64,000 nucleotides of DNA from Mantamonas sphyraenae STR306 (taxonomy: Eukaryota > Protista > CRuMs): NCBI GenBank assembly GCA_026936335.1, contig JAPMXV010000055.1, positions 124,001 to 188,000 of the forward strand, read 5' to 3'. A program made the position numbers and the translations under genes. Positions 37,486 to 41,091 of the stretch are shown piece after piece. Each line of letters starts with the position of its first letter. Position 1 is the stretch's first letter. Below the pieces are notes generated by a model, which made no database searches, was not told the origin of the DNA, and worked only from the letters and a program-made list of their open reading frames with translations.

Positions 37486-37674
37486 AGGACAGCACACAAA
37501 GGAGCAATAGATTCGTATTCAGTGCATGTTGTGTTGTGATCTGCATAGCGGCGGGGTCGTCTACTGCTTTCCCGTTCGTGTTAGAGTGGGAATTGTCGGT
37601 TTGTCGGGTTTGGTGTGCAAGAGAGCGTGGTAACGAGAGGGTGGAACGGTTTATCTTTGGTACACAGAAGGGGT

Positions 37675-37730
37675 GTTTTCCTCTTTAGAACAGAATGGGT
37701 TGTGGCATTATTTGTGTTTTGAATGCCAGG
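37675..37730 (-). promoter_or_regulatory. Histone 3' element of H2B
   Basis: Minus strand CCTGGCATT-CAAAACACAAAT-AATGCCA-CAACCCATTCTGTTCTAAAGAGGAAAAC. Confidence 0.85.
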
Positions 37731-37855: not shown

Positions 37856-38194
37856 TTATGCCTGGGTGTACTTGGTGACGGCCTTGGTGCCCTCGCTGAC
37901 GGCGTGCTTGGCCAGCTCTCCCGGGAGGAGCAGACGCACAGCGGTCTGGATCTCTCGGCTCGAGATGGTGCTCTTGCGGTTGGCCTTGGCCAGACGAGAA
38001 GCCTCGTTGGCGATGCGCTCAAAGGTGTCGTTGATGAACGAGTTCATGATGGACATGGCGCGGTTGGAGATACCGGTGTCCGGGTGCACCTGCTTCAGCA
38101 CCTTGTAGATGTACGAGGAGTAGGTCTCCACGCGGCGCTTGCGACGCTTGCTGTCGTCGTTCTTTCGTACAGACTTGCCTGCCTTCTTTGCCAT
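37856..38194 (-). CDS. H2B: Histone H2B, intronless, short N-tail
   Basis: [47 protein letters not shown]. Confidence 0.98.
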
Positions 38195-38550: not shown

Positions 38551-38940
38551 ATGGCAAAGAAGACTTCCAAGGCTGCGGCTCAAGGCCGCTCGCGTTCCAG
38601 CAAGGCTGGTCTGCAGTTCCCGGTCGGTCGTGTGCACCGCCACCTGCGCAACGGCCGCTTCGCCGCGCGCATCGGCGCTGGCGCCCCCGTGTACCTGGCC
38701 GCTGTGCTGGAGTACCTGACGGCTGAGATCCTGGAGCTGGCTGGCAACGCTTCGCGAGACAACAAGCGCAAGCGTATTGTGCCGCGCCACATCCAGCTGG
38801 CTGTGCGCAACGACGAGGAGCTGAACAAGCTGCTGGGCGACGTGACCATCGCTCAGGGTGGTGTGCTGCCCAACATCCACGCCGTGCTCCTGCCCTCCAA
38901 GACCAAGAAGGACGGCAGCAGCCAGTCGCAGGTGTTCTAA
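38551..38940 (+). CDS. H2A: Histone H2A with H2A.X-like C-terminus SQSQVF
   Basis: [42 protein letters not shown]. Confidence 0.98.
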
Positions 38941-39021
38941 ATCTGCTGGCAACAACTCCCGCCGACACCCATTCTCGTCGGCAAGCGGACTCCTGAACCT
39001 CGCGTTCACAAACCAAACAAC

Positions 39022-39077
39022 CCTGGCATTCCAAACACAAATAATGCCACAAACCCATTCCTTTCTAAGGAGAAGAA
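39022..39077 (+). promoter_or_regulatory. Histone 3' element of H2A
   Basis: CCTGGCATT-CCAAACACAAAT-AATGCCA-CAAACCCATTCCTTTCTAAGGAGAAGAA. Confidence 0.85.
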
Positions 39078-39349
39078 TGCCCCGTGTGAAGCGGATAAAC
39101 TCTTTCGACCACTTTAGGGCCGTCTTGGATGATTGTGAGTGGGAGAGGAAGGGAGACGTTCATTGAAAAGTGACCTGGGGTGGTCACCATTGTGTGAGCA
39201 CGCACACACCCGCGTGCGGGGGACGTGATCCACACTGGGGATTCGATCTGCTTGCTTTTCATCTTTAGATCCTCCTGAGCCCGGATCTTGCCCACAGCCA
39301 TGCCAACAGAACCAATCGGGTGTTTATCTTCTTTTTGTCTTTGGTGGTT

Positions 39350-39403
39350 GTTTTCCTCTTTAGAAAAGAATGGTTGTGGCATTATTTGTTTTTGAATGCC
39401 AGG
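39350..39403 (-). promoter_or_regulatory. Histone 3' element of H3
   Basis: Minus strand CCTGGCATT-CAAAAACAAAT-AATGCCA-CAACCATTCTTTTCTAAAGAGGAAAAC. Confidence 0.85.
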
Positions 39404-39549
39404 TTGTTGTTTGTAGTTTGATTGTCGAGGGTGCGGCTCCGACGTGCGTGGCTGGGTGGACGACTGCAGGGCTTTGCCCTCGTCCTTCCACACCATCCAC
39501 CACACCGCCGTCACCAAAATGCACACACTCGAGAGGCCAGGCCGGGCGC

Positions 39550-40639
<1,090 letters not shown>

Positions 40640-40699
40640 ACTGCTTGCCCACGTGCAGCAGCTACAGCTCTTGGTTGTTTCAACCACACACAAAAAAAA

Positions 40700-40755
40700 C
40701 TGGCATTCAAACACAAATAATGCCGCAACCCCATTCTTTTCTAAGGAGGAAAACA
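40700..40755 (+). promoter_or_regulatory. Histone 3' element of H4
   Basis: CTGGCATT-CAAACACAAAT-AATGCCG-CAACCCCATTCTTTTCTAAGGAGGAAAAC. Confidence 0.85.
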
Positions 40756-41091
40756 ACCCACAACGAGAGTGAAAGAGAGATAAAAACCATGATTTCAGCG
40801 AGGGGAAGGAGGAGGAGGAGACGGAGGGACGATGGTGTGTCCACGTCTGCCTTTTGCATTGCTTCCCTACCTCTCTTCCCACGTGTTCACCGTGTCTTCC
40901 TCTCCACATGCCTGCGGCCGTGCACAATCTTTCATCACCAGCCACTCCGCACGCCAATCCCAACAACCACCTCGCCCCATCGCACACAACAAGCAAATAT
41001 CCTCCTCCAACCACACCCCCTCTCTCTCTCCAATCCATCAACATTTCACTGTGAACTACTGTATCGTCTACTTGGCTGTTCTGTCGAATGT

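Follow-up and report, generated by a model that had tools for sequence, protein, structure and literature searches.

A nearly invariant box after a long-loop hairpin at the histone 3' ends of a protist, and its possible kinship with the animal histone downstream element

The clustered core-histone genes of the protist Mantamonas sphyraenae end in a common 3' element, in which a long-loop hairpin is followed by a nearly invariant ~24-nt block, CCAYTCYKTTCTAARGAGGAAAAC (hereafter the box). Its core, TTCTAARGAG, was present in 17/17 of these genes in a genome-wide alignment. Our preferred reading, which we regard as about evenly balanced between right and wrong, is that the box forms the downstream half of a histone-specific pre-mRNA 3'-end processing signal and corresponds in function to the animal histone downstream element (HDE). 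Cutting of histone mRNA in the animal style probably operates in this protist. SLBP would bind the long-loop hairpin and a U7-type particle containing Lsm11 would dock on the box, where a small RNA reading ...CCUCUUU... would most likely pair with AARGAGG. The particle would bring the CPSF73 nuclease to cut close to the conserved CCA, which precedes the purine core by 9 nt, and the mature mRNA would lack both the box and a poly(A) tail.

Histone genes and their common 3' element

The window, by which we mean the whole 64-kb stretch of DNA that was analysed (G+C 59%), belongs to an assembly of 25.06 Mb in 78 contigs and holds a quartet of histone genes (Table 1). A hairpin-pattern search of the genome gave 17 histone 3' ends on five contigs, consisting of quartets on C24, C41, C55, and C65 and a single H3 gene on C14; all searches excluded the H2B coding region. 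Further histone-fold genes came from a Pfam histone search, namely a CenH3-like gene with an intron (C61) and two copies of H2A.Z (C15). There was also an H2A-fusion gene (L127, G000:C63:79800-81500), in which a complete H2A fold forms the C-terminus of a frame of at least 276 aa and is joined to a long N-terminal extension unrelated to it. The 3' flanks of the CenH3-like gene, both H2A.Z copies, and the H2A fusion were checked and contained no hairpin, box, or GATAAA (a third motif, treated below). The 3' element is therefore restricted to the canonical clustered genes, and in animals the stem-loop and HDE are likewise confined to canonical (replication-type) histone genes.

Table 1 Histone genes, 3' elements, and related motifs in the window
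Feature	Position	Strand	Description
H2B gene	37856-38194	-	histone quartet
H2A gene	38553-38940	+	histone quartet
H3 gene	39550-39960	-	histone quartet
H4 gene	40328-40639	+	histone quartet
H2B 3' hairpin	37704-37729	-	7-bp stem TGGCATT/AATGCCA, 12-nt loop, A/C-rich; non-canonical
H2A 3' hairpin	39023-39048	+	same hairpin class
H3 3' hairpin	39378-39402	-	same hairpin class
H4 3' hairpin	40700-40724	+	same hairpin class
H2B box	37675-37698	-	CCATTCTG + TTCTAAAGAGGAAAAC (pyrimidine half, UAA, purine half); TTCTAARGAG 37681-37690, purine core AARGAG 37686-37681
H2A box, most deviant copy	39055-39078	+	CCATTCCT + TTCTAAGGAGAAGAAT; TTCTAARGAG 39063-39072, purine core 39067-39072
H3 box	39350-39373	-	CCATTCTT + TTCTAAAGAGGAAAAC; TTCTAARGAG 39356-39365, purine core 39361-39356
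H4 box	40731-40754	+	CCATTCTT + TTCTAAGGAGGAAAAC; TTCTAARGAG 40739-40748, purine core 40743-40748
GATAAA, H2B	37650-37655	-	third motif common to histone genes
GATAAA, H2A	39094-39099	+	third motif common to histone genes
GATAAA, H3	39323-39328	-	third motif common to histone genes
GATAAA, H4	40779-40784	+	third motif common to histone genes
Degenerate extra box	39255-39270	-	ATCTAAAGATGAAAAG; H2A-H3 spacer, 13/16 bases

Sequence of the box. Alignment of the four histone 3' flanks in the window resolved a common element of 55-60 nt, with sequence on either side that is unrelated between genes. Its parts follow one another in the order A-rich lead-in, hairpin, ACAAC(C)(C), and box. TTCTAARGAG had 4 matches in the 64-kb window vs 0.05 expected, and 4 matches were reached in 0/100 shuffles. 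An initial annotation made on the window had reported this motif in all four genes, and all its coordinates, among them those for the purine cores of H2B, H2A, H3, and H4, were exact. Within the 25 Mb the 12-mer TCCTCYTTAGAA occurs in 15 copies, every one at a histone 3' end; the 2/17 genes that have no exact copy are the window H2A (GAGAAGAAT) and one H3 (GAGCAAAAC). The purine half differs by gene class, with AAAGAGG in H3 and H2B and AAGGAGG in H4 and H2A, a difference that a single guide U would tolerate as U-A or U-G. A metagenome scan for the hairpin plus the box returned 10 chance matches and no histone genes.

The likeness of the copies might instead result from gene conversion among clusters, with no function of the box itself. 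The clusters are recent duplicates whose flanks are alike over 100-130 nt, and relics of 3' ends point to frequent rearrangement, but the block is common to H2A, H2B, H3, and H4 despite unrelated sequence on both sides, and we consider this origin extremely unlikely. Retention of the box across four non-homologous genes with differing flanks argues for the HDE reading.

Hairpin and spacing. The 3' hairpin has a 7-bp stem (TGGCATT/AATGCCA) and an A/C-rich loop of 10-12 nt. No canonical hairpin with a 6-bp stem and 4-nt loop was found upstream of the box, Rfam reported no family at gathering score on the window, and RF00032 (canonical histone stem-loop) gave no match at E up to 10 in 38900-40800. 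From the last stem base to AAR the distance is 15 nt in H3, 16 nt in H2B and three H2A genes, and 17 nt in H4 and the window H2A; the spacing of 16-18 nt given by the initial annotation equals these measured 15-17 nt when counted from GCC. Only the run of C that separates the stem from CCA varies in length (3-5 nt), while the distance from CCA to the purine core is 9 nt in 17/17 genes. A constant CCA-to-core distance with a variable hairpin-to-CCA distance fits a ruler anchored on the box. If the cut falls at CA as in animals, the putative cut site would keep its distance to the box and not to the hairpin. Upstream of the main hairpin, at 38961-38982, the 3' UTR of the window H2A also contains a further small one, GCCGAC/GTCGGC, whose loop repeats ACCCATTC, the words that come after the main hairpin.

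Relic copies. The degenerate extra box in the H2A-H3 spacer lies where the conserved H3 flank ends, and its + strand reads as an anti-HDE. Only this cluster has such a copy. As a small-RNA gene the anti-HDE was rejected, as it is not conserved and has no U7-like fold (z +1.55), and the information content of the pattern leads to an estimate of ~1 such 3-mismatch match expected per window. The spacer copy is probably a rearrangement relic and not a gene. On C14 a piece of H3 3' flank with GATAAA and half a box ends inside the box (L001:460-550; G000:C14 ~99300-99390). This indicates that clusters were rearranged with relics left behind, and the spacer copy most likely arose in the same way.

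Folding of the box and the downstream GATAAA

Second hairpin or protein site. Both the pyrimidine and the purine half of the box are conserved, as would be expected if the box were bound by a protein or folded into a small hairpin of its own, UUCUUU-UCU-AARGAG, in either case needing no guide and perhaps staying in the mRNA. In the protein-site version, an extended SLBP complex or another RNA-binding protein could work together with the main hairpin. The initial annotation had pointed out that the box can fold and the pairs it listed were recovered, with C-G in one H2A, U-A in H3 and H2B, U-G in H4 and H2A, and a G-A mismatch in the window H2B. A second pair alternates between U-G and C-G, and 98.9% of cells are pairable. 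Pairability on paper was as far as this alternative went, however, since stability and covariation were no better than chance. Folding energies were -1.5 to -4.2 kcal/mol, with z -0.85 to +0.59 vs shuffles, and RNAfold gave registers that vary by gene and no hairpin for the window H2B. The covariation was reached by 229/500 shuffles, with changes on both sides in one sequence only, and an alternative register had no two-sided change; such pairing is available to any run of pyrimidines with a run of purines after it. Even with the guide RNA not found (see below), which speaks for a box that acts without one, we judge a second hairpin or protein site unlikely.

GATAAA. This hexamer is conserved 19-30 nt beyond the box in 17/17 clustered histone genes. 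It is a weak variant of AAUAAA, and together with the box it could form a histone cleavage/polyadenylation or termination module. Transcripts would then end past the box and carry poly(A), with the hairpin and box kept in the 3' UTR, where they would regulate stability or translation. Stem-loop and poly(A) features have been described as coexisting in early-diverging fungi (preprint 10.64898/2026.10.14.759114). Against such a module, the 11 other GATAAA sites of the window all lie in coding-looking DNA, and the 3' flanks of three variant histone genes lack the hexamer. GATAAA thus looks like a third motif peculiar to histone genes and not like a general poly(A) signal. Polyadenylation also leaves the presence of Lsm11 unexplained. 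We therefore find it decidedly unlikely that the box belongs to a polyadenylation or termination module. GATAAA may be a back-up poly(A) site.

Protein machinery and the search for a guide RNA

SLBP and Lsm proteins. The genome encodes SLBP (C45:56064-56264, in a 236-aa frame), matched by PF15247 with E 1.6e-26 and 4.9e-27 (94-97 bits). An LSM-domain search of the genome found 21 loci, which were assigned by sequence to SmB/D1/D2/D3/E/F/G, Lsm1-8, a Naa38-like protein (confirmed in a separate search), an ataxin-2-like protein, and one extra SmD2-like protein of 253 aa (L052:949-1707). Among solved structures, the best match of this extra protein was human LSm11 (E 1.3e-11, 47.8 bits), compared with 6e-3 for SmD2. 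The match covers 113 residues with both Sm motifs and the preceding helix, the nearest ESM Atlas clusters carry the LSM11_N domain, and the true SmD2 is encoded separately. On this sequence evidence, the protein is an Lsm11 orthologue. Its N-terminal 60 aa as a lone query gave no match, and a word search found no relatives. In animals the U7 snRNP is the sole known home of Lsm11 (PMC7026596). Lsm10 was not found among the 21 LSM-domain loci, and an SmD1 query returned only SmD1 itself and SmD3.

Promoter-based and Rfam searches. The animal U7 gene has a UCUUU box, the Sm site RUUUNUCYNG, a 3' hairpin, and a PSE promoter, and its RNA is ≤70 nt (PMC5054213). The initial annotation had predicted a small RNA with a 5' complement of the box, and ~10 genome search designs failed to find it. 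The U7 model RF00066 of Rfam gave nothing credible, its only match being at E 8 in coding-like DNA. The Rfam route also missed a real U5 snRNA, both genome-wide and on the locus itself, which indicates a low sensitivity and makes the U7 negatives weak. From U1 and U4 we derived an snRNA promoter element, GGTCGCRAGTNGTC, whose end lies 51-55 nt ahead of the RNA start. It is found upstream of U1 (C60:306254), U4 (C34:139540 and 147184), U6 (C69), and U5 (C6:313641), and it also precedes tRNA-Sec (C23:44057; Rfam 64.6 bits), a ~240-nt RNA (L079, C20:75434), and L083 (C70). Promoter-linked loci with a PSE at ≤2 mismatches included none that was U7-like; this inspection took in all matches bar one copy of a five-copy dispersed repeat, the other four copies of which were inspected. 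Loci with the U2-type upstream motif likewise held no U7-like gene.

Several features of these small-RNA genes deserve mention in their own right. GGTCGCRAGTNGTC precedes both presumed Pol II genes and presumed Pol III genes, and all of those named above terminate in a run of at least 5 T. Both copies of U2 (C43) have AGGCTGCATGTGCGCAC at the same distance in its place. L083 (G000:C70:278500-279750) consists of four tandem genes of ~150-180 nt with the snRNA promoter, a T-run terminator, and no Rfam match. Two U6 genes (L081 and L082, G000:C69:263250-263600 and 274440-274800) are split by a ~115-nt GT...AG insertion after ACAGAGAAGATTAG, and the Rfam U6 match covers only their 3' part (35.8 bits). 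The U5 gene (L085, G000:C6:313380-313670, minus strand) was found through the promoter and has a textbook U5 fold, with the loop UGCCUUUUCCU vs the usual ...UUUUACU.

Complement searches. The search of 25 Mb with TCCTCYTTAGAA gave histone 3' ends only and no guide gene, and apart from histone genes the core complement CTCTTTAGAA occurred only at the stop codons of three actin genes and at one further, unrelated site. The three actin 3' ends (L061-L063, G000:C37:52684, 73008, and 75041) are identical, and their stop context, TTCTAAAGAG, coincides with the box core by chance. Exact box complements of 10-12 nt, or of 14 nt with wobble, identified no RNA gene outside the histone genes, and a wobble-tolerant 14-mer search found nothing U7-like. 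No U7 was found with the pattern CTCTTT..AATYT..TTTTT or with CCTC/TCTT..AATTTNTC..TTTT (anti-HDE, Sm site, and T-run). TCTTT..RTTTNTCYNG had 53 matches vs 65 in the control, and none of the 20 inspected was U7. TTTCCTCTTT and TTTTCCTCYTT proved to be common CT-rich words, and inspection of 39 UUUUCCUCUUU sites revealed no U7-like gene. One weak candidate on C56 (259230-259268; CCUCUUUGCC-AAAUUUCUC...) combined a 7-nt complement with an Sm-like site but had no 3' hairpin within 259230-259268. RNA duplex energies of the box with small RNAs of known or unknown identity were not discriminating (background mean -21 kcal/mol), and public sequencing runs included none of this organism's RNA, with six metatranscriptome runs sharing 5-6% of words. 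All guide searches are blind to a guide that has a short or wobbly duplex together with an atypical Sm site and an atypical promoter. If the invariant 24-nt block were fully paired, a long complement would be predicted, and that none was found counts against the HDE reading. Of the U7-like guide envisaged by the initial annotation, the surroundings were found, namely an HDE-like box with SLBP and Lsm11 encoded, and the guide RNA and Lsm10 were not.

With Lsm11 encoded and U7 not found, an Sm-type ring might be placed on the histone pre-mRNA itself. The pyrimidine half, AUUCUUUUCU, would be an Sm-type site in cis, and a ring with Lsm11 would sit on the pre-mRNA beside the hairpin with no need of U7. 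The Sm sites of this organism's own U1 (AAUUUCUUCUC), U2 (AAUUUCUCUCG), and U5 (AAUUUCUGG) resemble the pyrimidine half in make-up. However, at positions important in Sm sites the sequence is ACUCUUUU in three H2A genes and AUUCUGUU in one H2B, and the purine half is conserved at least as well as the pyrimidine half. We know of no precedent for an Sm-type ring assembling in cis on a pre-mRNA and hold this arrangement to be very improbable. A broader possibility, also doubtful, is that a U7-type Lsm11 particle is targeted in an unconventional manner, either by a highly divergent guide, without the animal Sm site, promoter, or long complement, or by a ring directly on the pyrimidine half without a guide.

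Relationship to known histone processing systems

Animals. The HDE reading draws on several similarities to the animal HDE and U7 snRNP (U7 snRNA, Lsm10, Lsm11, FLASH, CPSF73). The purine core comes shortly after an SLBP-type hairpin at a fixed distance, a CA-containing stretch lies between the hairpin and the core, only canonical core-histone genes have the signal, and Lsm11 and SLBP are encoded. The H3/H2B core AAAGAG is also that of the mouse H2a HDE, where it pairs with CUCUUU of U7 (PMC7026596). The initial annotation had likened the box to the animal HDE, and position, core, and gene restriction all agree with it. It had also likened the box complement to the vertebrate U7 sequence CUCUUUUAGAA; this likeness is probably not meaningful beyond CUCUUU, since the next two letters, AA, are already part of the U7 Sm site AAUUUGUCU (PMC7026596).

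The protist also departs from the animal system in several respects. U7 RNA and Lsm10 were not found in this genome. Animal HDEs are variable outside the core, whereas the protist box is longer, at 24 nt, and nearly invariant including its pyrimidine half. The animal hairpin has 6 bp and a 4-nt loop, in contrast to the 7-bp stem and 10-12-nt loop here, and GATAAA is added downstream of the box. In Drosophila, histone genes have cryptic poly(A) signals downstream of the HDE that are used when SLBP or U7 is missing. The A-rich hexamer GATAAA resembles these in following soon after the box in every gene; unlike them, it is putative in this role and not evidently the organism's general poly(A) signal. 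Signals of the Drosophila type are touched on in the discussion of a recent preprint (10.64898/2026.10.14.759114).

Algae and other protists. As a non-animal lineage, the protist shares SLBP, a core-histone 3' hairpin, a purine-rich downstream region, and LSM11 with the stem-loop systems of green algae and protists. Stem-loops with purine-rich downstream regions were reportedly described in these groups by Lopez and Samuelsson in 2008. To our knowledge, U7 RNA has been validated in animals only. The U7 snRNP is still described as metazoan-specific (PMC7026596), while the same preprint (October 2026, 10.64898/2026.10.14.759114) reports that LSM10, LSM11, and FLASH are widespread beyond animals, that green algae and protists have purine-rich regions downstream, and that a U7-like RNA is predicted in Rozella only. 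In that pipeline a hairpin must have 6 bp and a 4-nt loop, and HDE calls are based on the words AAA or AAGA. Surveys that demand such hairpins would miss the long-loop hairpin of this protist. Unlike in the algal and protist surveys, the box is defined here base by base in 17 genes, with its spacing measured. Given the occurrence of LSM10 and LSM11 outside animals, the general idea is no longer new, but a sharply defined box with a deviant hairpin is.

The combination of an invariant box in 17 genes, an AAAGAG core, a 9-nt ruler from CCA, Lsm11, SLBP, and a long-loop hairpin makes this protist a sharp test case. It bears on whether a U7-like guide arose before animals and on the form that such a guide takes once the hairpin has changed. 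If no guide exists, the box would represent a new way to recruit the histone cleavage machinery.
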